Positions 20,643 through 56,326 of a DNA stretch of 64,000 bases are shown piece after piece (position 1 is the stretch's first letter; each line of letters starts with the position of its first letter). The notes below the pieces were generated by a model that did no database searches, had not been told where the DNA came from, and saw only the letters and a list, made by a program, of their open reading frames with translations. Location: the NCBI GenBank assembly GCA_002269645.1, contig NIVC01001385.1, positions 186,001 to 250,000 on the forward strand, given 5' to 3'. The DNA comes from Macrostomum lignano. Its lineage: Eukaryota. Position numbers and translations under genes: made by a program.

Positions 20643-21734
20643 TCAATATGTGGAGGTGGTAGCCGTCTTCTGATCCACCGGCTTCCAGAATTTTACCGTC
20701 TCCAAGAGAAGCCGACGGAACTTGGCATTTTTCCACACCAGCAGGATCCAGTTGGTGGACTGGCCAATGATGATGGTCGAGATGCCGATATCGTGAATTC
20801 CCCACAACACGATGGAGGTTTCATTCTCGATTTCGCCTAAAAGCAGCGTTAGAACGTACTCACTGGTTCGGGCAAAGAAGGTCAGCGAGGCAGACAAAAG
20901 CAGACAGGCCGACAGAGCGAGGCAGATCACTGTGTTTACTAGCCCGTCATCAGATTCCTTAGCAGAGCCCAGCCTCTTTCTATTGGCGGTGATCTCCCGT
21001 ACCTTGTGAATCAGGAAGCAGTTCTCAATGAAAATAATCGCCAATAAAAGGGCCGGTGGGTAGTAAAGCAAAGCCGAATAGTAGTATAGAATGGTTTGTT
21101 GCCATGGTAACATTTCGTGGAAGCTGAAGTAGCAGACTACGTAGATATCAAAAATCAACCAATGAAAAATGAAGGCGATGGGAAGGGTGACAACCATACA
21201 GGCCAGGATCACTAATAACCCGGCCTTCATCGCAGCCTTTCCGCTGATGCTATGAAATTTGAACGGAAAGTACAGGCTTAGAGTCCTGTCGGTAACCATT
21301 AGCAGAAACATTGCAGTCGATGTTAGGTGGCACAGGTGCTCAAAATATTTGGCAAATCTACACTGCACGTCTCCGTCGTTAAGATGTACATAACCGACGG
21401 ATCCGTTGGTTAACCAGGGCAGACCCTTGGCCAAGAACATCCACATGAAGCCGTTCACGATGATGTTGCAGCTGTCGGTGACCGCAATTATGCTGATGTA
21501 CACATTCTGTCGAGTCCACGACTGTTTGACCAGGTTGATGTACACTATGAGAGCGTTGAACACGAGACCGGAGACAATGAAAACAGGCAGAATCAGGCCC
21601 GTGATGGCACCCAGGACGGTGTTGACAGTGCAACTCGCTGTTCTGTTCGGGTCCCCACTTTGACAATCCGACACTATATAGTCGACAGAGTCCACAAAAA
21701 TATAGTTGACAGCGCTTGGCGTCGCGTTACTCAT
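20643..21734 (-). CDS. Intronless rhodopsin-like (class A) orphan GPCR, copy 1, ~363 aa
   Basis: Seven hydrophobic segments, TM3 Cys (VQCRF), TDRTLSLYFP (DRY-like motif), ECL2 Cys (VCY), N-glycosylation sites in the N-terminus. ATG at 21734; the ORF track starts at an upstream TTG. Confidence 0.9.
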   Translation of the reverse strand: MSNATPSAVNYIFVDSVDYIVSDCQSGDPNRTASCTVNTVLGAITGLILPVFIVSGLVFNALIVYINLVKQSWTRQNVYISIIAVTDSCNIIVNGFMWMFLAKGLPWLTNGSVGYVHLNDGDVQCRFAKYFEHLCHLTSTAMFLLMVTDRTLSLYFPFKFHSISGKAAMKAGLLVILACMVVTLPIAFIFHWLIFDIYVVCYFSFHEMLPWQQTILYYYSALLYYPPALLLAIIFIENCFLIHKVREITANRKRLGSAKESDDGLVNTVICLALSACLLLSASLTFFARTSEYVLTLLLGEIENETSIVLWGIHDIGISTIIIGQSTNWILLVWKNAKFRRLLLETVKFWKPVDQKTATTSTY

Positions 21735-22560
21735 GACTGCTTCGAACAAGGATTAACAGAGCTTGTGACACTTTCGCTCATCGGAAAATAAGATAGCAAT
21801 AGTCTTCAACTTGAAGCTCTAGTTGGTAGTCTGCTTATCCAGCACTCGGCCCTGCAATTGAGAACGTCAGTTTTATGGGTTTAAATAGCGCTTTTTTCAT
21901 CGCCCCAAGCAGTAGCCCCGCCCAATTTTCGCGTGTCAATGATGGTGCGTGCAACACTGGGCGATTTCCATTTGCCGGCTTTTTGTTTTTATACATGTTT
22001 AGTTCAGCCGTTTTAACACGACAAAAGCTGTGGTTCGATGCTTTTAGCGGAAATTAACGAAATTGGATGGCTCTCAAAGCATTTTACCGAATTCAGCTTC
22101 TGAGATAACTGAAGGGACAAAAGATGACTTAAATCGACGCCACCATACACCATTTTGACCGCGCCCTGCATTAACATTTCGATTGAGACATCAAGCTTTG
22201 AAATAGAGCTGTGCAGTCACGTGAAAGCGCTCTCCATCAAACAACCAACTTCAGAACTCAATTTCTGCTATCTCCAGGGCTGTGTGCTGTAGGAAGAAGG
22301 AGTTTGTTGTTTCAATGCATCATTGGGTCAATCGATGTCCCAGCTAAGCGTCTTGTAACGTACAGTCCGGTGGGTCGATGCCAACCGGAGAGGCGGCTCA
22401 ACGGCCTGGTGCTACCCACACTGTACTCGTACATGCAGTAAGCACGAGAAGCTCTGAAGACATGCCAGATGACGTCAAGGCTGCAATTTTCTGCTATGGC
22501 GCTTCCGGTGAGGCGATGGAACTACTGCGATGTGACCAGTCGTTCAACTACATAATATGG
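21735..22560 (-). promoter_or_regulatory. Conserved upstream region of GPCR copy 1, with TATA-like TATTTAAA and GC box GGGCGGGG
   Basis: About 700 bp nearly identical to 54500-55237 (inverted) and homologous to 36643-37450. TATTTAAA at 21880-21887 and GGGCGGGG at ~21916-21923 on the minus strand are shared by the three intact copies. Confidence 0.6.
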
Positions 22561-23589
22561 TACTTGACGGCTCAAAAACTTTTCACATAATTTGACACAT
22601 TTTTTATTCTAATCCATTTCTCAAAGTGCCATTTAGAGGTAGAAAGTGAAGCCCATTTCCTCTTTAAGTGTATTTGGAGCTTGTTTAGTTCTCCCAGATA
22701 AATTCGAACAGGAAATTTCGGATAATGTTTGGAATTTTGAAAACCTTTCTGCAGAGGATAGAATATTTTCGCTAATGACCCAAGAAGCAAGCGAAATAAT
22801 GGAAATTTTAGCGAACTTCATAAAACGATAAAAGACATGTCACAAGCCAGAATACAACTGCCCTGAGGTTTCATGTTGGTACCGTAAAATCTCGAATACC
22901 CTGTTTGCGTTCGAGATTTAGCTCGTATTATAACTGACAGGCCAGATGTGCGAATGGGTTTTAAAGATTAACTAATTTTTGACTGCCATAAGTTTGCTAC
23001 AGGTGAATCGATTGACTTTAAACTTGACACGATTCTTCATCGACTTATTCTATGTCTAAATATACAAAACAGTCTCAACTCTGTAACTCAATCAGGACAG
23101 AAACTGTAAGCATGCGAACTTTGTCTGGTTCGCTGTGCCCCAGTGGAGAAGCCACAGGTAGCTAGCTCGAATAGGACAGTTTGGCGAGAAATTCTAACCA
23201 TTGTCCTACAAGTGTAGTTCAACAGCGAATGAGGAAGATGACAAGGCAATCAATAAACAATAATACTGCCATTGCTTTGTAAAAGCGATACAATCCTGAA
23301 TTAGTCTTTAACTCATAGAATCACTTTAGCTTCACTTAAACGCATATTAAAATTGAAATGCCTTAGAAGAAAAGCATATCATTGTAGATCGTTTGGCTGC
23401 TGCAGCTTGACGATTCAGTTCTGTAAGGCTGAAGCAGGAACATCACATAGCACGGAAGAAGCAGATAACACAGGTAGCTCTGCACAGGCCAGGTCGAGTG
23501 CAATTGCGGCAGAAGGAGAGCAAACCCAGATAAGAAGCCTTTGACCACAGACAAGATCATTGACACCAGCAGCCATAGCCAATTAATTA

Positions 23590-24260: not shown

Positions 24261-27200
24261 CTATGGACGGAGGGTTGGCGCCGCCCAGGGAGGTCCCCCA
24301 GTGTCGCCAGCAGCTATGGTGCTCTCTGGAAAGGAGAGTTCAGCCCTGCGGGTGGCCCGAAGGTAGCGCATGAGCTGATTAAAGTTTTCGGGTTTGCACG
24401 CTTCAGTAATAGATGTGTGTGGCCCGAGGTAAGTGAGTCTGGCCCGCGTGAAGGCGGGACAGATGCTGACGAAATGCTCAGCGGTTTCGTCACCTGAGTT
24501 GCAGAAACTACAGGTGGCGTTGGTGGCGTTGCCCTGCAGGTACTGGTGCCTGGAGAAGCAGCCGTGACCAGAGAGGGTCATGGTGGCAGCCCGGATGTCT
24601 CTGCGCGAGAGGCGCAAGAGGAGCTTCCGGAGCTGGTGAGAGGGCTGAGGGACAGCGCCTCTGGATTGCCTGCAGTTCGTGCGGTTCGCCCAAGTCGAGC
24701 GGTGCTGAGTCCTGATCCACGCTTTGATGCGCGAGTCGATGACACAGCCAGGAATCGGGACAAGAGGTTCGGGGCCGAGAGAGGAGCCGGAGGCACCAAC
24801 TTTTGCAAGGGTGTCAGCCAACTCATTTCCTCGGATCCCCACATGCCCCGGAACCCACTTAAGGGTAATTTTGTTGGCGGAACCCAACACATTGAGGAGT
24901 TTGATACAGTCAAGGACTGTAGCAGAGTTGGTGCTGCAGCCACTGATGGCGTGCAAGGCAGCTTGGCTGTCCGAATGGAAAATGATGTTCTTACCAGTAA
25001 CGCCAGTGGCGAGAAGCTCTGCAGTGCAGGAGCTGATGGCCAGAACTTCATTTTGGAAAACACTGGAGTTGACCCCAGTGTATTGAGCGTGGGTAGCGAT
25101 GACCCTCCCGTTCAGAAAGATTCCAACACCAAAGCCGGTGTTGGCTGACTGCTTAGAACCGTCGGTGTAGCAATGAAGCTCACCAGGGTTCCAATGGTCA
25201 TTGATGTTATCGCGCGAGTCGATAGCTACGGAGTAGCGCTGTCTCAGGTTGAGCGTTGAGGCAATGCCATCGGTGAAGACGCGATTGGCCTGACACTCGT
25301 TGAGAAAGTTGAGGCACAGATCGCTATGCGGGACAAGGTTCCGCTTAGCAGGTGCTCTCATGTAAATGAATTTGACGCCGGCATCAATTAGACGCCGCGT
25401 CGTTCTAGCCGCCTCACCCCTGATGAAGAGGTCAAGAGGCGGAAGATTAAGAAAGGCCCCCATGCCAGCAAAGGGCGTGGACCTGGTGGCGTTGCAGATG
25501 AGCCTACACGCTCTGCCTTGGATCGTGTTGAGCAGGTCTGCATGGCTTTTGACCTGGGTAGCGCTAACCCAGACAACAGAGGCGTACGTAATGGCAGGTC
25601 TAACTACGGAAGTATAGATCCACCAAAGCCGCTTTGGGGATAGACCCCAAGAAGTGCCAAGTGCTCGTCGGAGCTGGGCCAGGATGGCTGAGGCACGCTT
25701 AGCTTTTGCTTTCACGTGGAAGGACCAGTTGAGCCGGTGGTCAAGTGTGACCCCGAGACATCTGGTCTGGTGCGCGAAGGCAATATCTCTGCCGTAGAGC
25801 TGCAGAGGACGTATGTTCCAGCGTAGTCTGCTGGTAAACATAATGGCAACGGTTTTGGGCTCAGAGAGTTCCAAACCATTGTCATTGGCCCAGGATTCTG
25901 CTTTGCGGATAAAGCTCTGCATCAGATCCCTGAGCGTGCTGGGAGACGGTCCTGCCACAATGGCCGTGACGTCATCAGCATACCCGACTTTGAAGACGGG
26001 GTCAGGTCGGGAGTCACTCAGAAGAGCGTCCATGACCAGGTTCCAGAGCGTCGGGGTGAGGACTCCGCCTTGGGGTCCACCCTTACAGACTCTGGTGGAG
26101 GCAGTTTGCCCAAGAAGTTGGGCAGTGACCGTACGGTTGGAGATCATGTACATGATCCACCGTATGAGGGTAGCATGAGCTTTGCGATTTTGAAGGGCCC
26201 TCTGAAACGCTTCAAAGATAACGTTGTCGAAGGCGCCAACAATGTCAAGAAAGAGAGCCAGGGCGTAACCGTCACCCAGTACCGCCCGTTCAATCTTTTC
26301 GACAATCGCATGCAGGGCGCTGTCAGTCGACCTCCCGGTACGGAAGGCGTGCTGATTATTGCTGAGGGGCATCGCTGTCAGCTCGCAGGAGAGCAGCCGC
26401 CAGAGAATAAGCCTCTCAGTGAGCTTAAGCATTGCTGACGTTAAGCTAATTGGCCGGAAGGCCTTGACGCTTTGGTAGTCACCCTTCCCAGGTTTGGGAA
26501 TAAAGACTACTCGAGCTTCAGTCCAGCTTTTGGGAACGTATCCCAGCTGGATAGAGGCCCGCATAAGATTGCGGGTGAGTCTCAGGAACGAGGGTATCTT
26601 GGCTGCTTCACGAAGGAGAACAGGGTAGATACCATCAGGTCCAGGAGATTTGAAGGGTTTGAAGGTTCTGACCGCACGAGCGATTAGGTCTTCAGTGACA
26701 ATGCCCGCCGCTAGGGTGGCTCCATCCATCGAATGGTTGGGCTCCGGTCTAGCAGTAGGTACCCTCGGGAAGAATGTGCTAAGCATATGCTGAAGCACTT
26801 CTTCAGGGTCTTTAGTAAGAGAGCCATCATCTTTTTTGATCATGGCTAATTTGGACATTTTGTCCATTGTAAGGGCCTTGACAAGCCTAGAAGTAGGTCT
26901 GTCTTGATCCAATTCATTGCAGAATTGGCGCCACTTACATTCCTTGGCCTTGCGCACTTCAGATTTGAAATTGCGGGAGGCTTGCCGGAAAAGCTCCATG
27001 TCCTCCGGGTTTCCGGTCTTCATGGCACGGCGATGAAGGCTTTTGGCCTTCCGCCTGAGTTTCCCCAGCTCCGGGTTCCACCACGGCGCCGAGGTCTTGC
27101 CTCTGTAGGCGCGAGCAGGACAAGCCGCTTCGTAGGCTGCAATAATGCAACCTGTCAGCGTCTCAGCCATATGATCCACATCCTCGCAGGTCTCAATCGG

Positions 27201-28000
27201 ACGTAAGTCCGTGAGTTCCTGCAGGTGCAGATCAAGGGCAGCCTTGTAGGCCGCCCAATCAGTGTTGCGGATATTGCGTCTCCAAGTGATCGGAGACTGG
27301 GTTTTAGTGTCCGCGATATTAAAGGCAATAAAGCAGTGGTCAGACAGGGAGGGCTCCTCAGACCAGACTCTCCACTCCTTGACTCTGTCAAAGAGTCTTG
27401 GGGTAACGAGTGTGGCGTCGAGGACCTCGGTCCATCTGCCATTATTAAAGGTAGGGTGCTGCCGCGGTTGCAGAGCATGAGGTTTGTGTTAGAGATGAGG
27501 GCCAGAAGCTCCTCTCCTCTAGTGTTGGTATCTTTGCTGCCCCAGTGCTTGTGGTGCGCGTTGAGGTCGCCCCCTAAGCACAGCTCAGCGTTCTGGGACT
27601 CGCAGTACTGCGCAAGGCGCAGTAAACTCTCGGGAGCAGGGTCTCTGTCGCCTGGGATATAAACCGAGGCAACAAGACACGTACGCGGAGAGAAATGATT
27701 AGATTGGATGACGCAAAGGTCTCCATCAGAGAGATCAGTCCTCAGCCAAGCCTGGAGATGGCTAGCAGCGAGGATAGCCGCTCTAGGGCGGCTGTTCCCC
27801 GGGCCACACACATAAAAATCAGAGTAGCCAGAGGGAATGTTGGGCAACTTACCGTTGCGCATCCAGGGTTCCTGGATCAGGATGAGGCCTGGCCTGTACA
27901 GCTCAGCAATCTTCATCAGATTTACTGACGCAGATACGCAATGCTGTAAATTTATTTGCAGACAGAATGTCGCTCCTTTGGCAGCGTGGAGCTTAGTCAT
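24261..28000 (-). CDS. LINE ORF2 (AP endonuclease - reverse transcriptase - RNase H - Zn knuckle), one frameshift at ~27454-27456
   Basis: APE motifs LQINLQH, LIQEPW, GGDLNAHH. RT motifs SPGPDG, RPISL, QGGVLTP, YADD. RNase H motifs YTDGS, SDSQAAL, WVPGH...NELAD. CSFC...EHF...CP. Adding one C in a CCC run restores STPTFNNGRW and fuses ORFs 27155..28000 and 24261..27179. Confidence 0.92.
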
Positions 28001-28039
28001 ACTGTATTAAATGCAATATCTGGCTAGAGCCCAGGGTCA

Positions 28040-29545
28040 TCAAGGAGACTTGGACAACAGATCGTCCTCGTCCCAGGCCGCTGGGGCTTGACTGGGAGAT
28101 GGGAGTTGGTCGACGTCCATGGCCTCCTCACCCCCACCGGCCCCCCCAGCAGACTCCTCAGGCTCCGATGACAGGATGGAGGAAGCTTCCTCACCTGCAT
28201 CTTTACCTTCAGACCCCACCAAGGTGGCCGAGGAGAGCTCGGATTCCGAAGACCCGGCCTCGTCCTCAACTCCTTCTCCGACTGGCAGGTTTGGTTCCCG
28301 GGGCTCGGCCGGAGCCGTTACCGCGGTCGCCGAACTGCTGCTAGCAGAGGGGCGAGATGCAGCTTTGGCTTTGGGATCGGCTTGCGCCTTTCCTTGGGCC
28401 TTAGACTGCGCCCCGCTCTTGCCGGAGATGCCGGGGTTGGCAGTAGCCTTCCCTTTGGCAGACTTTCCTCGGCGCAACTTGAGCTTGAGGGCACCCAGCT
28501 GGAAAGAGGATCCATTAGGGTACCGACTCGCCCAAGTGCTGGAAAGGCCGAGGACAATTGAGTTGCCCGTCTCCCCCCTGCGGACTTTACGGTGATACAC
28601 CAGTCCACTAGCAGGGAGGTCGGGGTTCAGACGCAGTAGGACCCGGCGAATAACGTCTGGTCCAGCTGCGGTGCTCTTAGCAGGGACGAAAACCACATAG
28701 GGTATCGTCTTTGGACGCTGGCCCTCGCGAAGAAAAAGAGCTCCGCCAAGGTCAGCATCCAAGGAGACCGTCGGTAGCCGCTGGAGCAGCCGCCGAGCGT
28801 CCTCCTCGCTGCTAGGAGCAATAAGAACGAATGTGCTTCGCAGCACCATCCGCTCAACGCCGATGGAGATTCCCTCCTCGACAGTCAGCTCAATCAGATA
28901 GGAGTCAACAGCACTCCACACTTTTTGAAGCTGATCAGTGGTCCAGTCCTGGTCGCGACCTTGGATGATCACTCCCGGGATTTTGGCCTTGGCCTTCGCC
29001 GCAAAGGTAGCTCCCGAAGGAACCTCCTTGTTGGCAGTGGCCATTTGTTGCGCCGTGGTTTCGGCCTCAGCAGCCGCGGCAGCAGCTCCAGGGAGCGCCG
29101 CCGCTGAACTACTGGAGCTTCCACCGGCCGGCCCGCCTGGTTGCCTTGGGACTCCAGTCGCTTCAGCATCCATGGTGGACGCCGCCGCTTTGGCCCCCGC
29201 AGCTCCCTTCTTGGCCTGCCTTTTGGCGCGTTGTTTAGCGCGTTTGCGCTCAAGCCGAGCCCGCTGAGCTTCATCGGATCTGCCAGATTTGGCCGGTCCT
29301 TTAGGCTCAGAGCTCGCGGTTCCCTTAGATCCACCAGCGGAGCTGGCAGGTCTTAGGGTATTTTGAGTTTGGTAGCTCTGGTCGGATCTGCCAGCAGAGC
29401 CAGCCGGTCCTTCCTTTGCCACAGTTGAATCAGTCGGTTGGGATCTGCCAGCAGGGCCGGCCGGTCCTTCGGACTGAGGTTGGGGTTTAGAAGGGTCCCC
29501 ATCCCTAGAAATAGCTTGTTTATCCATAGTCGGCTCGAAGGCCAT
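28040..29545 (-). CDS. LINE ORF1 (501 aa)
   Basis: Long ORF between the 5' UTR and ORF2. Low-complexity N-terminus. Core YVVFVP...LLRLNPDLP...IVLGLS...FQLGALKL resembles the DUF4780-type ORF1 of LOA/R1-like elements (recognition from memory). Confidence 0.85.
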   Translation of the reverse strand: MAFEPTMDKQAISRDGDPSKPQPQSEGPAGPAGRSQPTDSTVAKEGPAGSAGRSDQSYQTQNTLRPASSAGGSKGTASSEPKGPAKSGRSDEAQRARLERKRAKQRAKRQAKKGAAGAKAAASTMDAEATGVPRQPGGPAGGSSSSSAAALPGAAAAAAEAETTAQQMATANKEVPSGATFAAKAKAKIPGVIIQGRDQDWTTDQLQKVWSAVDSYLIELTVEEGISIGVERMVLRSTFVLIAPSSEEDARRLLQRLPTVSLDADLGGALFLREGQRPKTIPYVVFVPAKSTAAGPDVIRRVLLRLNPDLPASGLVYHRKVRRGETGNSIVLGLSSTWASRYPNGSSFQLGALKLKLRRGKSAKGKATANPGISGKSGAQSKAQGKAQADPKAKAASRPSASSSSATAVTAPAEPREPNLPVGEGVEDEAGSSESELSSATLVGSEGKDAGEEASSILSSEPEESAGGAGGGEEAMDVDQLPSPSQAPAAWDEDDLLSKSP

Positions 29546-30918: not shown

Positions 30919-32757
30919 CAGGGGCGTCGCCAACGGGGGGACAGGGACATGTCCCCCCAGTAAAAGATTTGAGGGGGACATGCCATTGCTTTGTCCCCCC
31001 ACCCCACCTTGTGATCCGTTATGGAAATCAATAATTTTGCAGCTGGGCGACAAAAAAAAGCGCCTGCGGCGCTGAAATGAGTGCCTGCGGCGCTAAAATG
31101 AGAGCCTGCGGCGCTAAAATGAGTGCCTGCGGCGCTAAAATGAGAGCCTGCGGCGCTAAAATGAGAGCCTGCGTCGCTAAAATGAGAGCCTGCGGCGCTA
31201 AAATGAGTGCCTGCGGCGCTAAAATGAGAGCCTGCGGCGCTAAAATGAGAGCCTGCGGCGCTAAAATAAGAGCCTGCGGCGCTAAAATGAGAGCCTGCGG
31301 CGCTAAAATGAGTGCCTGCGGCGCCAAAATGAGAGCCTGCGGCGCTAAAATGAGTGCCTGCGGCGCTAAAATGAGAGCCTGCGGCGCTAAAATGAGTGCC
31401 TGCGGCGCTAAAATGAGAGCCTGCGGCGCTAAAATGAGAGCCTGCGGCGCTAAAATGAGAGCCTGCGGCGCTAAAATGAGTGCCTGCGGCGCCAAAATGA
31501 GAGCCTGCGGCGCTAAAATGAGTGCCTGCGGCGCCAAAATGAGAGCCTGCGGCGCTAAAATGAGAGCCTGCGGCGCTAAAATGAGTGCCTGCGGCGCCAA
31601 AATGAGAGCCTGCGGCGCTAAAATGAGAGCCTGCGGCGCTAAAATGAGAGCCTGCGGCGCTAAAATGAGTGCCTGCGGCGCTAAAATGAGAGCCTGCGGC
31701 GCTAAAATGAGAGCCTGCGGCGCTAAAATGAGAGCCTGCGGCGCTAAAATGAGTGCCTGCGGCGCCAAAATGAGTGCCTGCGGTACTAAAATGAGTGCCT
31801 GCGGCGCCAAAATCAGTGCCTGCGGCCCTAAAATGAGTGCCTGCGGCGCTAAAATGAGTGCTTGCAGAGCCAAAATAAGAGCCTGTGGCGCTAAAATGAG
31901 AGCCTGCGTCGCTAAAATGAGAGCCTGCGGCGCTAAAATGAGTGCCTGCGGCGCTAAAACGAGAGCCTGCGGCGCTAAAATGAGAGCCTGCGGCGCTAAA
32001 ATAAGAGCCTGTGGCGCTAAAATGAGAGCCTGCGTCGCTAAAATGAGAGCCTGCGGCGCTAAAATGAGTGCCTGCGGCGCTAAAATGAGAGCCTGCGGCG
32101 CTAAAATGAGAGCCTGCGGCGCTAAAATGAGTGCCTGCGGCGCTAAAATGAGAGCCTGCGGCGCTAAAATGAGAGCCTGCGGCGCTAAAATGAGAGCCTG
32201 CGGCGCTAAAATGAGTGCCTGCGGCGCCAAAATGAGAGCCTGCGGCGCTAAAATGAGTGCCTGCGGCGCCAAAATGAGAGCCTGCGGCGCTAAAATGAGT
32301 GCCTGCGGCGCCAAAATGAGTGCCTGCGGCGCCAAAATGAGAGCCTGCGGCGCTAAAATGAGTGCCTGCGGCGCTAAAATGAGAGCCTGCGGCGCTAAAA
32401 TGAGTGCCTGCGGCGCTAAAATGAGAGCCTGCGGCGCTAAAATGAGAGCCTGCGGCGCTAAAATGAGAGCCTGCGGCGCTAAAATGAGTGCCTGCGGCGC
32501 CAAAATCAGTGCCTGCGGCCCTAAAATGAGTGCCTGCGGCGCTAAAATGAGTGCTTGCAGAGCCAAAATAAGAGCCTGTGGCGCTAAAATGAGTGCCTGC
32601 GGCGCCAAAATGAGTGCTGACAACACCGATTTTGAAAATAATGTACATGCAGGAAGTTAGTAGTACTACTTACAGTAATACTAGTAACAATGTACATGTA
32701 CGTGTATAATTGTTGGCTTTGCCCCCCCCCACCAAAAAATCCATGGCGACGCCCCTG
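30919..32757. mobile_element. hAT-type MITE carrying an expanded internal satellite
   Basis: Perfect 14-bp TIR CAGGGGCGTCGCCA / TGGCGACGCCCCTG. Exact 8-bp TSD AGCACAAC at 30911-30918 and 32758-32765. Confidence 0.92.
31070..32615. repeat. 21-bp satellite (GCCTGCGGCGCTAAAATGAG[A/T])n, ~73 copies
   Basis: Tandem array inside the MITE. Being 21 bp and stop-free in several frames, it produces the 527-585 aa artefact ORFs. Confidence 0.97.
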
Positions 32758-35484: not shown

Positions 35485-36642
35485 TTAATTGTCATCGAGT
35501 TTACCTCCGCTAGCTAGTTCTCTCACTTTAATAGGATCCATATTTAATTCACAACTGGTGGCAGTGGTAGCCGATTTTTGATCTACCGGTTTCCAGCATT
35601 TTACCGTCTCCAAGAGAAGCCGACAGAACTTGGCATTCTTCCACACCAGCAGGATCCAGTTGGTGGACTGGCCAATGATGATGGTCGAGATGCCGATGTC
35701 GTGAACTCCCCACAACACGGTGGCCGTGTTATAATCGATTCCACCAAAAAGCAGCGTTAGAACGTACTCGCTGGTTCGGGCAAAGAAAGTCAGCGAGGCA
35801 GACAGAAGCAGACAGACCGACAGAGCGAGGCAGATCACTGTGTTTACTAGCCCGTCATCAGATTCCTTAGCAGAGCCCAGCCTCTTTCTATTGGCGGTGA
35901 TCTCCCGTACCTTGTGAATCAGGAAGCAGTTCTCAATGAAAATAATCGCCAATAAAAGGGCCGGTGGGTAGTAAAGCAAAGCCGAATAGTAGTATAGAAC
36001 GGTTTGTTGCCATGGTAACAGCGTGTGGAAGCTGTAGTAGCAAATTAGGTACACTTCAAAAGTAAACCAATGAAAGATAAAGGCGATGGGAAGGGTGATA
36101 ATCACGCAGGCCAGAATCACCAATAACCCGGCCTTCATCGCAGCCTTTCCACTGATGCTCTGAAATTTGAACGGAAAGTACAGGCTTAGAGTCCTGTCAG
36201 TCACCATTAGCAGAAACACTGCAGTCGATGTTAGGTGGCACAGGTGCTCAAAGTATTTGGCAAATCTGCACTGCACGTCTCCGTCGTTGCTATTTACATA
36301 ACCGACGGACCCGTTGGTTAACCATGGCAGACCCTTGGCCAAGAACATCCACATGAAGCCGTTCACGATGATGTTGCAGCTGTCTGTGACCGCAATTATG
36401 CTGATGTACACATTCTGTCGAGTCCACGGTTGTTTGACCAGGTTGATGTACACTATGAGAGCGTTGAACACGAGACCGGAGACAATGAAAACAGGCAGAA
36501 TCAGGCCCGTGATGGCGCCAAGGACGGTGTTGACAGTGCAACTCGCTGTTCTGTTTGGGTCCCCACTTTGACAATCCGACACTATAAAGTCCACAGGGTC
36601 CAGGAAAATATAGTTGACAGCGCTTGGCGTCGCGTTACTCAT
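35485..36642 (-). CDS. Intronless orphan GPCR, copy 2, ~385 aa
   Basis: Paralogue of 20643-21734 with the same 7TM motifs. C-terminus extended by about 22 aa. Confidence 0.9.
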   Translation of the reverse strand: MSNATPSAVNYIFLDPVDFIVSDCQSGDPNRTASCTVNTVLGAITGLILPVFIVSGLVFNALIVYINLVKQPWTRQNVYISIIAVTDSCNIIVNGFMWMFLAKGLPWLTNGSVGYVNSNDGDVQCRFAKYFEHLCHLTSTAVFLLMVTDRTLSLYFPFKFQSISGKAAMKAGLLVILACVIITLPIAFIFHWFTFEVYLICYYSFHTLLPWQQTVLYYYSALLYYPPALLLAIIFIENCFLIHKVREITANRKRLGSAKESDDGLVNTVICLALSVCLLLSASLTFFARTSEYVLTLLFGGIDYNTATVLWGVHDIGISTIIIGQSTNWILLVWKNAKFCRLLLETVKCWKPVDQKSATTATSCELNMDPIKVRELASGGKLDDN

Positions 36643-37450
36643 GACTACTTTGAGCAAGGATTAACAGAGCTTGCGATGCGTTCGGTCCTTAGAGAATAAG
36701 ATAGCAATAGCGTTGAACGATGAAGCTCTAGTTGGTTGCTTGCTAAACCAGCACTTCACAATGCAATTGAAAACGGCAGCTTCGTGGGTTTAAATAGCGC
36801 TGTTTTCATCACCCCCAGCTGTAGCCCCGCCCAATTTTTGCGTGCCAATGGTGATTGAATGGGCGATTTCCGTTTGCCGGCTTTTTGTTTTACATGTTCA
36901 GTTCAACAGTCTTAACTCGATAAAAGCTGAGTGGTTCGATGCTTTTAGCGGAAATTAGCGAAAATCGAACACAGTCACGGCATTATACTGCATGGATTCA
37001 GCCTCCGAGATAAATGAAAGGAAAAAATGAGTTTTAATCGCCGCCGACCTGCAGCATTTTGACCGTTCCCTGAATTTTCTATTTTCTTACCGAGCTTTTA
37101 AATATAGCCCTCGCAGTCACGTGAAAGCGCTCTCCATCAAACCAGTCTGAAGCTATCTGAAGTGACAGTCTACTTCAGATAGCATTGTCTTCCATTTACT
37201 CGGGAGGACACAGAAGATTTTGATATCAATGCATCATTGGATCAATCGCTGTCCTAGCTAAAGTCTTGTAACGTACAGTGCGGTTGGTCGATTCCAGCCG
37301 GAGAGGCGATTCGATGGTCTGGTGGGGACTTTCTGCTGAGGCGTTCTCGAGGAGGCGACCGAACTTCTGCGATGTCATCTGTTCAACTACACAATATGGT
37401 TCTTGACAGCACAGCTCAGAATTTTTTCACTTAATCTCACCATTTCTATT
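36643..37450 (-). promoter_or_regulatory. Conserved upstream region of GPCR copy 2
   Basis: Homologous to the upstream flanks of copies 1 and 4, including GCGCTATTTAAACCC and GGGCGGGGCT. Confidence 0.55.
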
Positions 37451-39570: not shown

Positions 39571-39641
39571 TTCTTTTCGGATGAATGAATGTGCCACAAG
39601 CTCTGCTAATTCTTGCTCGAAGCAGTCATGAGTAACGCGAC

Positions 39642-43698: not shown

Positions 43699-44223
43699 GT
43701 GACACCAAGCGCTGTCAACTATATGTTTTCGGACTCTATCGACTATATAGTCTCGGATTGTCAAAGTGGGGACCCAAACCGAACAGCGACTTGCACTTTC
43801 AACACCGTCCTTGGCGCCATCACGGGCCTGATTCTGCCTGTTTTCGTTGTCTCCGGTCTCGTGTTCAACGCTCTAATTGTACACATCAACCTGGTCAAAC
43901 AGTCGTGGACTCGACAGAATGTGTACATCAGCATAATTGCGGTCACAGACAGCTGCAACATCATCGTGAACGGCTTCATGTGGATGTTATTGGCCAAGGG
44001 CTTGCCATGGTTAACCAACGGATCCGTCGGTTATGTACATCTCAACGACGGAGACGTGCAGTGTAGATTTGCCAAATATTTTGAGCACCTGTGCCACCTA
44101 ACATCGACTGCAGTGTTTCTGCTAATGGTTACCGACAGGACTCTAAGCCTGTACTTTCCATTTAAATTTCAGAGCATCAGCGGAAAGGCTGCGATGAAGG
44201 CTGGGTTATTGGTGATCCTGGCC

Positions 44224-44428
44224 GCATGCAAGGTGGGTTCAGCACGTTTGTGTAGCAGGAGACAGACCAGGCCTACGAGCTAAGGTCTGCGATCCTACAC
44301 ACCTCCACCCCCTCTATTCTGGTGCAGGAATGGCAGGAGAACTCTCTCCAAGCTGACTCACAAGTCGACCCAGGGGTTCACGCCCCGCATGTGTTCAAGG
44401 CAGCTCTAGGGCTGCTGGACTGACTGGG
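44224..44428 (+). ncRNA. Putative HDV-like self-cleaving ribozyme at the LINE 5' end
   Basis: P1 GCAUGC (44224) / GCAUGU (44387-92); P2 CCCAG (44369-73) / CUGGG (44424-28); P3 GGG/CCC; L3 UUCACGC; P4 GCAGCUC-UA-GGGCUGC (44400-15); J4/2 C44420-UGA. Confidence 0.8.
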
Positions 44429-46475
44429 CTCCGGCGGCGGCAACCCATCGGTGGCCAGTAGGCCAAGTTGGGTATGGGCTCCGCCCAGAAGTGAACCTGT
44501 GCGTATCAGGTACCTCTGGCCACCGCTCTGAGGAACAGGTATCACCCTCTGACCTTAACAGGGTATGCGACCAGTCCGCAGGCTCCGGAGGCAGTCCTCC
44601 TGCTTCCCTCAAGGGCCCAGTTTAGTACCGCGCTGATGGTCCTTTGGTTCGGCCTCTGGGTTTTCCAAGCCGGGCTCTTCGCCGGGGAGTTTCTCGGTTG
44701 CTAGCGGTCGGGCCGGTAAGGGCTTAAGCCACCCCCCGGTCGCTACCTCTTGGCCTGCCGGTGGGTTTGGGGTTACGGCCCAGCAGCTTCTCACCTCTAG
44801 TCCCCATTCGTCTTTCAGCGACTCATGTAGTATTCATTTACATCCAACACGTCCGAGGCTGCTGGAGCACCAACCGAGGTTGGTACCGCGGCCCAGCCGG
44901 ACATTCGCAACACCGGAACCTCCGGTGCCTCTCAGTCTGCCGCTGCCGCCGCTTAGGACAACACCGGAGTGGCTGGACAACAGGACAGCAGACCTCAGAT
45001 TTCTAAAAAGAAGGCCCGTAGCATTGCTCGCTACAAAGAGTTTCTCCAGCGCAAAGTGGAGGAACGGAGGAATGCGAAAGCCGCCCCTCCGGCCACCTCC
45101 GAGGAGGGTGCCGGTAACTCTGCGAACCCCGCGGAGGAGCCGACATCCGACAAGGGGGTGGACCCCGCGCGCCGGTCAGATGCATCAGGTGCCGCCGAAG
45201 CTCCTGGTGCGGCTGGCCCCTCCCGTGACTGGACCTCTGCCCGTGTGGAAGCTCCACGGCTGTGGAGAGATCCAAAGCGGGGGGTGCTGGCCAAACCACC
45301 AAGCCGAAGCGCACCTACGCGGCTATGGCCAAGAGGCAGCCGGCCCTGGTTATCCAAGGCCAGGAGACGCCTCTTACGGCCGAACAGTTCGACCTTATCT
45401 GGCGCCGGTTGGAGAGGACGGCTATCATTACTAGAGAGACCGGGAAGTCTCCTTTCAAGTCACCGGGACCTGACAACATTTATCCTGCCTTCCTCCATGA
45501 GGCAGTTAAAAATGACAGGTTTCTCGGCCTCCTCTGCAACCTCTTCAAGGCCAGCATTACCCTCGGGTATGTGCCAAAAGCCTGGCAAGAGGCTACGGTA
45601 GTCTTCATACCCAAGCCAGGAAAGGGAGACTATCACTCTGCCAAAGCTTACCGCCCTATCAGTCTGACGTCTTTCTTCCTCAAACTGATGGAACAGATGG
45701 TGCTCTGGCTGAGGAAAAGCTGAGGAACTCCCCGCTCTCCCCAAATAAGCACGCCTTTCGTCCTGGACGCTCCATCGAAAGTGCGCTGCACCCCATTGTC
45801 GACAAGCTGGAGCGCGCCGTGCTTGGCTGTGGATACGCACTGTCGCTTTTCCTCGACATTGATGGTGCTTTCAATAATGTGCTCTTTAAAGCCTTTAAGC
45901 GGGCCCTGGAATCCCGGGCACGCACGAGCACCTCACTCGCTGGATCATGTACGTGGTCTCCCATCGTACTGCCACCTCGCATCTTCTGGGACACTCACGC
46001 TCCGTGGAAGTCCAGAAAGACGGACCGCAAGGTGGAGTCCTCAGCCCGATCCTCCGGAATTTAGTCATGGCTGCTTTTCCAGGCATCGTCAACTCCAGGG
46101 AAAAATCCGCAGTGAGGAATGCCCATTCTGCCTCTCCGGTGTCGAGAATGCGGAGCACTTCATCTGTGAATGCCCCGCCTTTACTCAGGACAGGCTCACC
46201 AACCTCGGCCCAAACCCGGACCTCTCCGATGTTTTCAGGCCCGAGAATCTCTGCCAGCTCGTCCGCTACCTAAGGGCTACCGGGCGAGCGACAATCCACC
46301 TCCTGGACTCTCCGGAGGGGGACCGCGCTGCGGACACCGGCGCCACCGGAACTCCCTGCGCGACACCGCAGCACCAGCTGCCCGTGGTCGCCAAAGGCTA
46401 GCAAAATGGGCGGCAACGCCTCCTCGCTGTTTCCGGACGCACGGAGCCCCCTACAACTAAGTCAAGTAAGTCAAA
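44224..46475 (+). mobile_element. Internally deleted LOA-like LINE (2.25 kb) with both termini intact
   Basis: 5' end homologous to the element at 30065. Partial ORF1, an RT piece (SPGPDNIYP, RPISL) and the C-terminal CPFC...EHFICECP. Tail TAAGTCAAGTAAGTCAA. TSD ATCCTGGCC (44215-44223 / 46479-46487; 12 bp with 1 mismatch). Confidence 0.9.
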
Positions 46476-47239
46476 GTTATCCTGGCCTGCTTGGTTGTCA
46501 CCCTTCCCATCGCCTTCATTTTTGATATCTACGTAGTCTGCTACTTCAGCTTCCACGAAATGTTACCATGGCAACACACCGTTCTGTACTACTATTCGGC
46601 TTTGCTTTACTACCCACCGGCCCTTTTACTGGCGATTATTTTCATTGAGAACTGTTTCCTGATTCACAAGGTACGAGAGATCACCGCCAATAGAAAGAGG
46701 CTGGGCTCTGCTAAGGAATCTGATGACGGGCTAGTAAACACAGTGATCTGCCTCGCTCTGTCGGTCTGTCTGCTTCTGTCTGCCTCGCTGACCTTCTTTG
46801 CCCAAACCAGCGAGTACGTTCTAACGCTGCTTTTTGGCGGAATCGATTATAACAGGGCCACCGTGTTGTGGGGAGTTCACGACATCGGCATCTCGACCAT
46901 CATCATTGGCCAGTCCACCAACTGGATCCTGCTGGTGTGGAAGAATGCCAAGATTGGAAACGGTAAAGTACTGAAAGCCGGTGGATCAGAAGATGGCTAC
47001 CACAGCCACAAGTTAAATTTGGATTTCATTACAGTGAGAGAAATTAGCACTAGCTAGAGGAGATAAATTGCATGACAGCAAGCAAAACTATTATTTTTGT
47101 TCTAGTACTTCTAGAACTTGAGAACTTCGACTGTTTTCAACTCGAAAAACTGATCAAGAAATAAAAGTCATATTACATCAAAAAAACTTTTTTGATCCAA
47201 GATACGCTTTTTATTCGGATAATTATTGCAATCGTTACC

Positions 47240-50466: not shown

Positions 50467-50500
<34 letters not shown>

Positions 50501-50647: not shown

Positions 50648-51214
50648 CGCGCCGGATTTCTTCGTCGAGTGGAGACAAAGAAACCAACAGGTTTCTTGAG
50701 TGAAAGCACAAGAAAAATTGGAAGAAACGGGAAATGTTAAGAAGCAAGAGGGCGCAGCAGAAACCTCTTAGCAGTATAAATGAAACAAGAAAAGTCAGGC
50801 CTGTGCTATGCTAGCAATATGCAGCAGCTGTTGCCCTCTCTGCTTCCCAGAAGTAGCAAAGGGTGATTTCCTGTGCGAATCTCAGTCGCCCACTCCTTGG
50901 CCATGGCGATCATTAGAACGATAGAACCTGGGGTTGTAAACTTATACGAGCGTCACTATGGCTAGTAGACTCTAGAGAAATATATTATACCATTAAACTA
51001 TTGGAAATAAAAAACAGTAAAGCCTCTTTACACCGTCATGAAAGAAGGCCAGATATTGTGTGATCACATCAAATTATACTGCACTAAATTTGGTTCCTTT
51101 TTTAATTGGACGCGTGATTTGATGGCTCATTTGATGGCAGTTGTGAGTGTGGCGCAGAGCCCAACACAACACACTCAGTTATTAGGGGTCTTGAGTGCAG
51201 AAAAGAAAAAGAGG

Positions 51215-51945
51215 GGTGACATGCGCGACTGAGGACAGAGGCGAGATTGAAGAGCCAATCAGAAGGCAGTAGGGGAATGAAATACGAGCTAAAAAGGAGG
51301 GGTGGAGTGCGCGACTGAGGACAGAGGCGAGATTGAAGAGCCAATCAGAAGGCAGTAAGGGAATGAAATACGAGCTAAAAATGAGGGGTGGAGTGCGCGA
51401 CTGAGGACAGAGGCGAGATTGAAGAGCCAATCAGAAGGCAGTAAGGGAATGAAATACGAGCTAAAAGGAGGGGTGGAGTGCGCGACTGAGGACAGAGGCG
51501 AGATTGAAGAGCCAATCAGAAGGCAGTAAGGGAATGAAATACGAGCTAAAAGGAGGGGTGGAGTGCGCGTTTGAGGGCAAAGGCGAGATTGAAGAGCCAA
51601 TCAGAAGGCAGTAAGGGAAAGAAATACGAGCTAAAAAGGAGGGGTGGAGTGCGCGACTGAGGACAGAGGCGAGATTGAAGAGCCAATCAGAAGGCAGTAA
51701 GGAATGAAATACGAACTAAAAAAGAAGGGGTGGAGTGTGCGACTGAGGAAAGAGGCGAGATTGAAGAGCCAATCAGAAAGCAGTAAGGGAATGAAATACG
51801 AGCTAAAAAGGAGGGGTGGAGTGCGCGACTGAGGAAAGAGGCGAGATTGAAGAGCCAATCAGAAGGCAGTAAGGGAAAGAAATACGAGCTAAAAAGGAGG
51901 AGTGGAGTGCGCGACTGAGGGGAGAGGCGAGATTGAAGAGCGAGA
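51215..51945. repeat. 86-bp tandem repeat, ~8 copies, each with a CCAAT box (GAGCCAATCAG)
   Basis: CCAAT at 51255, 51341, 51427 and onward at ~86-bp spacing. Confidence 0.9.
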
Positions 51946-53248: not shown

Positions 53249-54499
53249 CAATAAAATCAGCAATTTTAGATGATTTTTTAGTATATAGGACTGTACTGTT
53301 GACAAGTATTTTGAGGTGTTTCAAGTCCGAATTGTTAAACTTATTGATGTCTTAAATGAAAGGGCATATGTTACTGCCTATTCTGCGCCAAAATAAGCAT
53401 CTTACGATCAATAGCGTGCACAGGAGATACATTGAAAAATGGGCCATCAATGAAATTTTCGCCAATTCTGAGTCTTTCGTCCTTCTACTTAAGTAGTCCT
53501 TGAGTCAAGAATGTACACTGTACATAGAAGATTGTGCAGATGGTTGAAAACTTCATTTCCGATCGATTTCATTTTAGTCAGTGATAAGAATGTTTCTTAT
53601 AATTTGCATTTACACTACCGTCCTAAAAGTAGTATCATTCTTGGTCCCCACAGCGAGATAGGGAGTGACCTATCTAGTTCTATAGTATCTGTGCTTTATC
53701 CTAGATATCCTGTTCAAATTTATCTGGGGAGCACAATTGAAGTTCCGACTAGCACTTTAACAGGAAGTGAAATTCACTTTGGGCAGGTCCCATTTTCGTA
53801 AGGGATCTCTGGTCTCGCAGTCCTCATTGCTTCGCAGGCCAGTTTATGGTTTGCTATTCTTATCTATGGCAGGGTGCGTTTTGATTCTGGATTGGAAATT
53901 TCTACATAGTACATTAGTTTTTGTTTGAGTAGTGCCATTTGAAGCTGCTGTAAAAGGGACTTTGTAGAGTTATCTGCCTTCTGGTCTCCGGTGTCTCGTA
54001 AATTCCAGTTCAAACTAGCTTTGTGTGTTCTGATTGAATTCGCTAGCTACTCGTTCATGTCGACAGTTTTGTATTATTTCGCTATTCATTTAAATGCTGT
54101 AAGGCCAGACAGGACTGAACTAGACAGAGAGTGACAGAAAGCATGCAGAATAAACAGAGACGAGAGCAGCTGACTAGATGAATGAGGTTTCGCCATAGAC
54201 AAATTCGCTCGAAAAGAATCAGTCTGAAAAAGTCACATTAAGCATCAAGAACAGCTTACGAACTTTCGCCAGAACTTTGCCTACTTGCCGGTTTCTGGTA
54301 GCAGTCCATGAACAAATGGAACAAATAGCTTGATAAAAATGTGCATTGTATTGTATATTAGACAGAAATAACTGCATTTTTCAGCACTACCATTCCAAGG
54401 AAAACAACTGACAGACGTTCCTTGAAATGCATTCTGAAGCGAAACTGCACTTCCGTGTACATTATCTTTTAATTATTGATTGCAGCCTTGACGTCATCT

Positions 54500-55237
54500 G
54501 GCACGTCTTCAGAGCTTCTCGTGCTTACTGCATGTACGAGTACAGTGTGGGTAGCACCAGGCCGTTGAGCCGCCTCTCCGGTTGGCATCGACCCACCGGA
54601 CTGTACGTTACAAGACGCTTAGCTGGGACATCGATTGACCCAATGATGCATTGAAACAACAAACTCCTTCTTCCTGCAGCACACAGCCCTGGAGATAGCA
54701 GAAATTGAGATCTGAAGTTGGTTGTTTGATGGAGAGCGCTTTCACGTGACTGCACAGCTCTATTTCAAAGCTTGATGTCTCAATCGAAATGTTAATGCAG
54801 GGCGCGGTCAAAATGGTGTATGGTGGCGTCGATTTAAGTCATCTTTTGTCCCTTCAGTTATCTCAGAAGCTGAATTCGGTAAAATGCTTTGAGAGCCATC
54901 CAATTTCGTTAATTTCCGCTAAAAGCATCGAACCACTCAGCTTTTGTAGAGTTAAGACTGTTGAACTGAACATGTAAAACAAAAAGCCGCAAATGGAAAT
55001 CGCCCAGTGTTGCACGCACCACCATTGACACGCAAAAATTGGGCGGGGCTACTGCTCGGGGCGATGAAAAAACCCATATAAACCTATTTAAACCCATAAA
55101 ACTGACGTTCTCAATTGCAGGGCCGAGTGCTGGATAAGCAGACTACCAACTAGAGCTTCAAGTTGAAGACTTTTGCTATCTTATTTTCCGATGAGCGAAA
55201 GTGTCACAAGTCCTGTTAATCCTTGCTCAAAGTAGTC
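54500..55237 (+). promoter_or_regulatory. Conserved upstream region of GPCR copy 4
   Basis: Near-identical inverted copy of 21735-22450. GGGCGGGGCT at ~55041 and TATTTAAACCC at ~55085. Confidence 0.6.
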
Positions 55238-56326
55238 ATGAGTAACGCGTCAAGCGCTGTCAACTATATTTTTGTGGACTCTGTCGACTATATAGTGTCG
55301 GATTGTCAAAGTGGGGACCCGAACAGAACGGCGACTTGCACTGTCAACACCGTCCTGGGTGCCATCACGGGCCTGGTTCTGCCTGTTTTCATTGTCTCCG
55401 GTCTCGTGTTCAACGCTCTCATAGTGTACATCAACCTGGTCAAACAACCGTGGACTCGACAGAATGTGTACATCAGCATAATTGCGGTCACAGACAGCTG
55501 CAACATCATCGTGAACGGCTTCATGTGGATGTTCTTGGCCAAGGGCTTGCCATGGTTAACCAACGGATCCGTCGGTTATGTACATCTTAACGACGGAGAC
55601 GTGCAGTGTAGATTTGCGAAATATTTTGAGCACCTGTGCCACCTAACATCGACTGCAGTGTTTCTGCTAATGGTGACTGACAGGACTCTAAGCCTGTACT
55701 TTCCGTTCAAATTTCAGAGCATCAGCGGAAAGGCTGCGATGAAGGCCGGGTTATTAGTGATCCTGGCCTGTATGGTTGTCACCCTTCCCATCGCCTTTAT
55801 CTTTCACTGGATAATTTATGAGAGCTACATAGTCTGTTACTACAGCATGCTCGAAATGTTACCATGGCAACACACCGTTCTGTACTACTATTCGGCTTTG
55901 CTTTACTACCCACCGGCCCTTTTACTGACGGTTATTTTCATTGAGAACTGTTTCCTGATTCACAAGGTACGAGAGATCACCGCCAATAGAAAGAGGCTGG
56001 GCTCTGCTAAGGAATCTGATGACGGGCTAGTAAACACAGTGATCTGCCTCGCTCTGTCGGCCTGTCTGCTTCTGTCTGCCTCGCTGACTTTCTTTGCCCG
56101 AACCAGCGAGTACGTTCTATCTCTGCTATTTGGCGAATACGATTCAGAAATAGGCACCGTGTTGTGGGGAATTCACGACATCGGCATATCAATGATCATA
56201 ATTGGCCAGTCCACCAACTGGATCCTGCTGGTGTGGAAGAATGCCAGGTTCCGTCGGCTTCTATTGGAGACGGTAAAATGCAGGAAACCGGTGGATCAGA
56301 AGACGGCTACCACTGGCACAAAATAA
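55238..56326 (+). CDS. Intronless orphan GPCR, copy 4, ~362 aa
   Basis: Paralogue with the same 7TM motifs; intact ORF. Confidence 0.9.
   Translation: MSNASSAVNYIFVDSVDYIVSDCQSGDPNRTATCTVNTVLGAITGLVLPVFIVSGLVFNALIVYINLVKQPWTRQNVYISIIAVTDSCNIIVNGFMWMFLAKGLPWLTNGSVGYVHLNDGDVQCRFAKYFEHLCHLTSTAVFLLMVTDRTLSLYFPFKFQSISGKAAMKAGLLVILACMVVTLPIAFIFHWIIYESYIVCYYSMLEMLPWQHTVLYYYSALLYYPPALLLTVIFIENCFLIHKVREITANRKRLGSAKESDDGLVNTVICLALSACLLLSASLTFFARTSEYVLSLLFGEYDSEIGTVLWGIHDIGISMIIIGQSTNWILLVWKNARFRRLLLETVKCRKPVDQKTATTGTK

Follow-up and report, generated by a model that had tools for sequence, protein, structure and literature searches.

The PROF1/Srfb orphan receptors form one of the largest GPCR (G protein-coupled receptor) groups that are specific to flatworms, and they have been proposed as selective anthelmintic targets. 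McVeigh et al. 2018 (PMC6114109) equated PROF1 with the planarian Srfb cluster. In PROF1, the motif N[F/G/I]..[Y/F/M/L] replaces NPxxY in transmembrane helix 7 (TM7), and a support vector machine classifier assigned all PROF1 receptors that it classified to the peptide class (Zamanian et al. 2011, PMC3261222). Srfb was put into a 'chemoreceptor' superfamily by Saberi et al. 2016 (PMC4862687), according to whom ophis, a member of the Srf/w superfamily, acts in somatic gonad cells and not in sensory neurons. In this study, a cluster of four paralogous receptor copies of the flatworm Macrostomum lignano was analyzed. It lies in a stretch of 64,000 nucleotides (contig NIVC01001385.1, positions 186,001 to 250,000 of the forward strand, assembly GCA_002269645.1), which is called the window in the following and to which all coordinates refer.

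A survey of lophotrochozoan class-A GPCRs (MBE 2025, PMC11886862), the dataset of which includes M. lignano, reported tandem, lineage-specific expansions with full-length, truncated and pseudogene members, a high heterogeneity at the extracellular ends of the TM helices and in the loops, and large repertoires in free-living flatworms. The term 'gene conversion' is absent from its main text. McVeigh et al. (PMC6114109) filtered M. lignano matches from a separate set of flatworm-specific rhodopsins, termed fwRhod. It is very probable that the locus described here is a PROF1/Srfb cluster of three intact genes and one pseudogene, in which gene conversion has produced a patchwork of segments and the divergence is focused on extracellular loops.

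Arrangement of the copies and assignment of the proteins

A six-frame listing of open reading frames (ORFs), combined with alignments, revealed four paralogues of a seven-transmembrane (7TM) receptor of approximately 363 amino acids (aa) between 20.6 and 56.3 kb. They are arranged head-to-head, with copies 1 and 2 (c1, c2) on the reverse and copies 3 and 4 (c3, c4) on the forward strand. The DNA between them includes a full-length non-long terminal repeat (non-LTR) retrotransposon, pol fragments that resemble Gypsy, and a large minisatellite. The coding sequence (CDS) of c1 (20643..21734, (-), 363 aa, ATG at 21732-21734) was delimited by the ORF, alignments and tblastn, that of c2 (35485..36642, (-), 385 aa) by ORF and alignment, and that of c4 (55238..56326, (+), 362 aa) by ORF, tblastn and a structure model. 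The tail of c2 is 22 aa longer due to a 7-bp insertion near the 3' end. Each of these three copies is intact and intronless, as a preliminary description of this DNA had stated, and consists of a single uninterrupted ORF spanning the full alignment with the relatives; an intron in the 5' untranslated region may exist. Copy 3 consists of two pieces (43701-44223 and 46488-~47010, both (+)). The four-copy cluster of the preliminary description thus holds for the number of paralogues, but not for the integrity of c3, which is split by a retroelement, truncated and frameshifted. A fifth copy or a further fragment was not found within the window by tblastn. Judged from their sequences, c1, c2 and c4 are intact genes under purifying selection.

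According to sequence profiles and modelling, the genes encode class-A (rhodopsin-like) GPCRs, in agreement with the preliminary description. Two profiles were searched against the PDB. The one derived from the three intact copies matched class-A GPCRs only, albeit weakly (best match oxytocin receptor, E=0.004). The one derived from 31 family sequences matched SSTR2 best (E=4.2e-21, positions 44-350, all seven TM helices), and all 60 matches listed, of 668 with E≤0.001, were class-A GPCRs. The family relative P0032 carries PF00001. A search of NCBIfam for a GPCR family gave nothing, as expected from this prokaryote-oriented library. An AlphaFold model of c4 based on the 31-sequence alignment (pLDDT 88.3, pTM 0.87) comprises seven TM helices, helix 8 and a β-hairpin in extracellular loop 2 (ECL2), and a model from the three window copies only was unusable (pLDDT 40.7). 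When the former was compared to the PDB with Foldseek, the top 50 matches were all class-A GPCRs (E down to 2e-9, TM score 0.57-0.81), and the top matches were of the peptide type (FPR1/2, SSTR2, opioid and MCH receptors (MCHR2)).

Four residues, N59 (N1.50), D86 (D2.50), C124 and C200 (numbered as in c4), do not vary between the intact copies. Across the 31 family sequences, C124 is invariant, N59 and C200 are conserved to at least 90%, and D is the consensus at the position of D86. The canonical microswitches are absent: DRT stands for DRY, SASL occupies the CWxP position, and TM7 reads NWILL instead of NPxxY, the lack of which had already been noticed in the preliminary description. Since degenerate microswitches have also been described for PROF1 (PMC3261222), they characterize the proteins as atypical members of the class and do not contradict the fold.

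The family relationship was examined with an exhaustive HMMER search of 1.84 billion (1.84e9) representative proteins, which yielded 99 matches with E≤1e-3, 40 of them with E≤1e-10. A word-indexed protein search with a single sequence gave no match, and its profile version found two proteins only. The named full-length members that were checked all belong to flatworms (Macrostomum, Echinococcus, Spirometra/Sparganum, Protopolystoma, Schistosoma, Opisthorchis, Clonorchis), and one match cluster also holds four fragments of 50 aa, three of which are named as proteins of the bacterium Methylocella tundrae; many further matches stem from Logan contigs. Some matches are labelled 'rhodopsin orphan GPCR' (Echinococcus) or 'rhodopsin-like orphan GPCR' (Schistosoma, Clonorchis). 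The published PROF1 sequences of Schistosoma mansoni (Additional file 7 of Zamanian et al. 2011, PMC3261222) served as reference and were compared locally. Copy 4 matched 12 of them with E-values from 3e-27 to 8e-8; the matches to SMPSC433 (E=3e-27) and SMP091950 (E=4e-26) were both full-length. All 99 HMMER matches matched this set as well, and they include published PROF1 genes themselves (P0039 = SMP084280, 100% identity; P0040 = SMPSC433, 99.6%). The homology of c4 to PROF1 is stronger than that to the best solved class-A receptor (E=3e-27 versus 0.004). These comparisons support that the cluster belongs to the flatworm-specific PROF1/Srfb group, with the clade placement made by strength of homology, and the tentative PROF1 assignment of the preliminary description is thereby substantiated.

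With regard to the motifs of PROF1 (Table 3 of PMC3261222), IAVTD in TM2 fits [L/I][A/S]..[D/E], and DRT in TM3 fits DR, but not the commonest third residues (C/M/L/V). In TM6, L...A.L agrees with two of three positions of the group I motif [F/Y]...[S/A].[P/L], and NW..L in TM7 retains N and resembles the group III motif N[F/I]..[M/L]. From the best BLAST partners and an AKGLP motif we infer an affinity to PROF1 group I. The sole other family member recovered from M. lignano, PAA60167.1 (33% identical; positions 10001-11447 of a locus on NIVC01002184.1, same assembly), is encoded by a single gene, and its locus contains no cluster. Its gene model omits the ECL2 region including the conserved Cys by means of an 'intron' of approximately 490 bp, which could reflect either faulty annotation or an insertion.

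Gene conversion and the pseudogene copy 3

In the preliminary description, c3 was regarded as a mosaic of the ECL2 of c1, the ECL3 of c2 and the WQHTV segment of c4. In the ECL2 window, c3 showed no difference to c1 and 11 differences to c2, and in the ECL3 window 10 differences to c1 and 2 to c2. The two segments are thus incongruent for c3 (Fisher p=6.7e-5), and the proposed origin of both loops can be maintained, whereas the link to c4 is weak (shared fragment of c3 and c4, codons 207-231, p=0.046, uncorrected). Further shared fragments were detected with the same GENECONV-like permutation test for c1/c3 (codons 181-208, 20 sites, p=0.0002), c2/c3 (codons 306-338, 13 sites, p=0.0006), c2/c4 (codons 53-100, p=0.007) and c1/c4 (codons 12-31, p=0.016). 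The 28 biallelic 2:2 sites of the CDS support three incompatible groupings of the copies at a ratio of 11:9:8. Homoplasy at a few fast sites was considered as a cause and rejected: simulations on a single tree reached the minority count in ≤0.1% of the runs, even with 150 mutable sites. Furthermore, the flanks and the CDS are discordant. Copies 1 and 4 differ at 3 of 500 sites upstream, at 73 of 1096 sites in the CDS (p=2.6e-9) and by approximately 30% downstream, and c2 is about 20% diverged from both of them upstream, yet only 7-8% in the CDS.

Non-allelic gene conversion, proposed in the preliminary description as segmental conversion, is well supported by these incompatible site patterns, shared fragments and discordant flanks, and it has affected the whole gene and not the loops alone. 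Short segments have been exchanged between the copies in such a way that no single genealogy applies and that the 7TM core is a patchwork kept similar. Every intact copy possesses its own ECL2 and its own ECL3, and shared loops involve only c3. The apparent shuffling of loops that had been described before was therefore found, but only in the dead copy. This distribution suggests that selection resists a homogenisation of the loops in the working genes.

Copy 3 is a pseudogene with five lesions, which were read from a four-way DNA alignment including the flanks and from the junction sequences. Its homology begins abruptly at 43701; everything upstream is lost, as are the ATG and the initial four codons, and in the alignment the 5' piece (43701..44223, (+)) covers codons ~5-177. 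At codon ~177 the copy is split by an internally deleted fragment of a non-LTR retroelement (44224..46478, (+), 2255 bp), and at its junctions the target site is perfectly duplicated over 9 bp (ATCCTGGCC, 44215-44223 and 46479-46487). The ORFs of this insert correspond to reverse transcriptase (RT)-like and C-terminal zinc-finger-like pieces, which are approximately 50% identical to the non-LTR element at 24261-29545. An intron was ruled out as the nature of this 2.26-kb interruption by the target-site duplication, the internal RT-like ORFs and the absence of the interruption from the other copies. According to alignment and translation, the 3' piece (46488..~47010, (+)) contains the remnant of ECL2 at 46521-46565 and ECL3 at 46824-46862. 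Just before ECL2, a 15-bp in-frame deletion at ~46520 removed five codons (FHWLI), which explains the sign '--' in the ECL2 string that the preliminary description gave for this copy. A 14-bp deletion after ~46954 causes a frameshift in the C-terminal tail, and a TGA occurs in the reference frame at codon 350.

Despite five disabling lesions, c3 exhibits fewer private non-synonymous changes than expected under neutrality (p=0.016). None of its private changes lies in either loop, and elsewhere 11 non-synonymous changes stand against 10 synonymous ones. This low ratio fits an import of sequence from the working copies. The single pseudogene therefore suggests a picture in which c3 would have been overwritten repeatedly from the working genes, the loops of which may stay distinct by selection or by chance.

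The non-LTR retrotransposon at 24261-29545 ((-)) looks full-length and comprises three ORFs, namely ORF1 (501 aa), a middle ORF of 281 aa to which no domain was assigned, and an ORF of 972 aa with RT and RNase H. Frameshifted pol pieces of the Gypsy/LTR type with integrase-like and RNase H/RT-like ORFs were located at 39958-43164 ((-)) and towards 43700; an LTR pair around them was not detected in 36700-43800. This Gypsy-like element adjoins the cut 5' end of c3 and may have caused its truncation.

Variability and selection in the extracellular loops

The three intact copies are variable at 50 of 363 residues, and 22 of these 50 are found within only 30 residues (hypergeometric p=2.8e-15), which are codons 192-208 and 296-308. 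In the AlphaFold model, the former represent the ECL2 hairpin around Cys200 (pLDDT of this block 85-86), and the latter run from the end of TM6 through ECL3 into the beginning of TM7. The preliminary description was thus right in locating the differences in ECL2 and ECL3, and the loop strings quoted there agree exactly with the translations. The variable ECL2 segment reads WLIFDIYVVCYFSFHEM in c1 (21111..21161, (-)), where the model assigns it to the hairpin, WFTFEVYLICYYSFHTL in c2 (36019..36069, (-)) and WIIYESYIVCYYSMLEM in c4 (55808..55858, (+)). The variable TM6-ECL3-TM7 segment reads TLLLGEIENETSI in c1 (20811..20849, (-); translation and AlphaFold model), TLLFGGIDYNTAT in c2 (35719..35757, (-)) and SLLFGEYDSEIGT in c4 (56120..56158, (+)). 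A NET sequon in the ECL3 segment is present in c1 only. In other flatworms, the regions of ECL2 and ECL3 are also the most variable ones of the family (2.9 and 3.2 bits compared to 1.7-2.5 bits in the helices).

The ratio of non-synonymous to synonymous substitutions (dN/dS, w) was calculated according to Nei-Gojobori. For the whole gene it amounted to 0.31-0.34 in the intact pairs and to 0.25-0.37 over all six pairs. In the core, dN was 0.025-0.033 (intact pairs) and dN/dS 0.18-0.25 (0.18-0.23 in the intact pairs). In the loops, dN rose to 0.32-0.43, and dN/dS was 1.08, 0.90 and 0.50 in the intact pairs, the last value being that of c2 versus c4. Hence, dN of the loops is about ten times and dN/dS about five times that of the core, and the proportion of non-synonymous to synonymous changes differed between the loops and the rest of the gene in each intact pair (Fisher p=0.0009, 0.0012 and 0.027). 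In no intact pair was the dN/dS of the loops significantly above 1 (p(w>1)=0.52, 0.63 and 0.93), at the low power that four sequences provide. As the loop windows were picked where the variation lies, which biases the ratio upward, the failure to exceed 1 is a conservative result. Of the selection scenario in the preliminary description, the elevated ratio in the loops relative to the core is retained, but positive selection could not be confirmed at loop ratios of 0.5-1.1.

In class-A receptors of the peptide type, ECL2 and the tip formed by TM6, ECL3 and TM7 represent the lid and the rim of the ligand pocket. Since the variable segments correspond to this lid and rim, it is most likely that the intact paralogues keep one signalling core and putatively bind different, related ligands, with recognition differing through ECL2 and ECL3. 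Three near-identical cores which differ almost solely in two loops represent a natural 'loop-swap' set, and this set could guide de-orphanisation and show the residues that set the specificity.

Several observations weigh against the overall explanation. The sample consists of four sequences, one of them dead, which is too few for a site-wise test, and the argument for a protection of the loops stands on one pseudogene. The dN/dS of the loops was counted on no more than 17-18 synonymous sites, of which many belong to multi-hit codons, so that the nominally raised dS of the loops (0.3-0.9) is unreliable, and the loop boundaries were set after the variation had been seen. The PHI recombination test was not significant (p=0.28-0.99), which we attribute to the low power of this test when there are four taxa and the tracts are very short, the adjacency of like site patterns was borderline (p=0.052), and the permutation test assumes that polymorphic sites can be exchanged for one another, despite their clustering in the loops. 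Finally, owing to the degenerate microswitches (DRT, no CWxP, NWILL), the coupling of the receptors is putative.

The preliminary description had favored positive selection on the ligand-binding face, with w>1 in the loops and conversion as the supplier of new loop combinations, and we concede a modest probability to this explanation. It is in line with the fivefold ratio in the loops, which reaches 1.0-1.5 in single comparisons of a loop or pair, with 9.5 non-synonymous versus 0.5 synonymous changes between the ECL3 of c1 and c3, with the common multi-nucleotide codon changes in the loops and with the lack of any ECL2 or ECL3 common to two intact copies. Moreover, the loops average approximately 1 despite invariant W, Y, C, S and G, and some sites may therefore exceed 1. 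However, neutrality was rejected nowhere (p(w>1) 0.11 at best), w is only half of 1 in the loops of c2 versus c4, the post hoc windows bias dN upward, and the loops are the least conserved regions family-wide, as relaxed constraint predicts. A merely relaxed constraint, with loops drifting neutrally without any consequence for specificity and a core held by purifying selection and concerted evolution, appears rather unlikely to us. It would account for a loop dN/dS of about 1, for the variability of the loops throughout the family, for a nucleotide divergence of the loops (18-32% per 50 bp) equal to that of the unconverted non-coding flanks (20-35%), and for a core dS (0.13-0.15 in the intact pairs; ≤0.17 with c3) below the flank divergence. 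Nevertheless, several loop positions (Cys, W, Y, S) are strictly conserved, the hairpin is confidently modelled where peptide receptors contact their ligand, and the intact copies have retained distinct loops amid surrounding conversion.

A further explanation, which we regard as unlikely, is that the divergent loop islands, instead of arising locally, were acquired by conversion with more distant PROF1 paralogues at other genomic sites. Private differences are indeed tightly clustered, for example as four consecutive bases in codons 207-208 of c2, the loop dS is nominally raised, and the transfer of whole loops is demonstrable (ECL2 of c1/c3, ECL3 of c2/c3). On the other hand, exact look-ups of c1 and c4 remained empty and word-based protein searches returned no close paralogue, with the donors themselves not being searchable; the only other relative recovered from M. 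lignano is distant, and the raised dS depends on multi-hit codons. Very unlikely is a cassette-exchange system, in which the core is homogenised by conversion, the loops of the working genes are kept distinct by selection and the transposon-broken c3 acts as an unselected store and intermediary of loops that are copied back to yield new pairings of ECL2 and ECL3; if true, it would correspond, in the germline, to pseudogene-templated diversification, here in a family of flatworm orphan receptors. Lastly, only one or two genes could be present, the haplotypes or homeologues of which were misplaced in tandem during assembly. M. lignano is a recent polyploid, its assemblies are difficult, and the regions upstream of c1 and c4 are 99.4% identical over 500 bp. 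We consider such an artefact extremely improbable, as the flanks differ from copy to copy (65-80% identity or no relationship), as do the neighbouring transposons, the lesions of c3 are private to it, and an independent UniProt gene model runs through c3 and then c4 in unchanged order. A cluster shaped by conversion, in which three intact paralogues differ in their pocket-forming loops, thus remains the explanation that we prefer.

Flanking regions and comparison with known receptor clusters

The three intact copies have 750-830 bp of homologous upstream sequence in common. A TATA-like motif (CTATTTAAACCCA) was found there by motif search, in c1 at 21876-21888 ((-), 142 bp before the ATG), in c2 at 36785..36797 ((-), 143 bp upstream of the ATG) and in c4 at 55084-55096. 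It is exactly conserved at a distance of 142-143 bp from the ATG in c1, c2 and c4 and occurs three times in the window, compared to an expectation of 0.05; it is absent from c3. Both this conserved upstream context and a dN/dS near 0.2 in the core speak for c1, c2 and c4 being functional. According to blastn and window identities, the upstream regions of c1 (21735..22487, (-)) and c4 (54479..55237, (+)) are homologous to each other. A part of them is 99.4% identical (21735-22264 and 54700-55237), at 6.7% difference in the CDS and approximately 30% in the 3' flanks. This near-identity points either to conversion that took place very recently or to a conserved element, in both cases limited to the promoter-distal region.

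The public gene model of the locus is chimeric. The exons of UniProt A0A1I8HJ75 (M. lignano, 2481 aa), one of the proteins matched in the HMMER search, map to 33156-62733 ((+)) of the window with 90-100% identity and combine sequence derived from transposable elements, both pieces of c3, a retroelement, c4 and a gene with cadherin repeats (56.7-63.6 kb). Its c4 portion agrees with the window throughout residues 1-345 and is cut off there. Exact-sequence look-ups in the protein collection and in public assemblies gave no record of c1 or c4 as separate genes, so that the present description is also of value for the annotation.

Beside the elements mentioned above, a unit of approximately 1.2 kb (18825-20032) was observed about 600 bp downstream of c1. 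It has terminal inverted repeats of approximately 158 bp (18825-18983 and 19875-20032, 96-100% complementary) and contains an ORF of 150 aa (19005-19457, (+)) that encodes a THAP zinc-finger domain (THAP1, E=1.5e-5); the unit has the appearance of a small DNA transposon carrying THAP. The load of minisatellites is unusually heavy (11208-15255, 31062-32614, 5040-5651, 6926-7590, 51206-51941, 60111-60524, 61988-62406). They include an array of 4 kb with a 29/56-bp unit in 144 copies and an array of 1.55 kb with a 21-bp unit in 74 copies, which gives rise to long spurious ORFs in several frames. Flanked by minisatellites, an ORF at 4307-4933 ((+)) shows zinc-finger motifs of a C2H2-like kind as well as a low-complexity stretch rich in glutamine.

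Compared to known systems, the best profile and structural matches of the cluster are peptide-type class-A receptors (somatostatin, opioid, formyl-peptide and MCH receptors), with which it shares an ECL2 β-hairpin tethered to TM3 by a disulfide. The identity to them is just 12-20%, and, unlike them, the cluster lacks CWxP and NPxxY, has DRT instead of DRY and possesses a family-specific insertion with the AKGLP motif in ECL1. Vertebrate and nematode chemoreceptor clusters (OR, V1R, TAAR, srw) are known for birth-and-death evolution with gene conversion. The present cluster resembles them in its intronless CDS, the tandem or inverted array, pseudogenes and transposon-rich surroundings, and likewise in the conversion between neighbouring genes and in the variability at pocket-lining or extracellular residues. 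Its sequence kinship to them is no closer than to class A in general, and the chemoreceptor or peptide-receptor role that the preliminary description proposed is putative.

The lophotrochozoan expansions (PMC11886862) agree with the cluster in being tandem and lineage-specific class-A groups with pseudogenes and a variable extracellular side. In those expansions the disulfide between TM3 and ECL2 is not conserved, whereas the M. lignano copies keep both cysteines (C124 and C200). Furthermore, positive selection was derived there from entropy, whereas dN/dS was measured here and did not exceed 1.

With PROF1/Srfb the cluster shares the restriction to flatworms, mere remnants of the rhodopsin motifs (IAVTD in TM2, DRT in TM3, NWILL in TM7), AKGLP in ECL1 and an N-terminal Cys pair. 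Fragments resembling pseudogenes had likewise been reported when PROF1 was first described (PMC3261222). The PROF1 sets presented in the literature originate from Schistosoma mansoni, Schmidtea mediterranea and Echinococcus, whereas the present cluster belongs to M. lignano and is only 23-26% identical to schistosome members. The passages of the PROF1 literature considered here (PMC3261222, PMC4862687, PMC6114109) do not describe conversion mosaicism or a divergence focused on the loops inside one cluster. Since receptor genes in tandem clusters are already known to include pseudogenes, to undergo conversion and to vary on the extracellular side, the locus is evolutionarily ordinary in this respect. 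Specific here are a hitherto unannotated Macrostomum branch of PROF1, the retained TM3-ECL2 disulfide, the clear conversion and a loop dN/dS of about 1.

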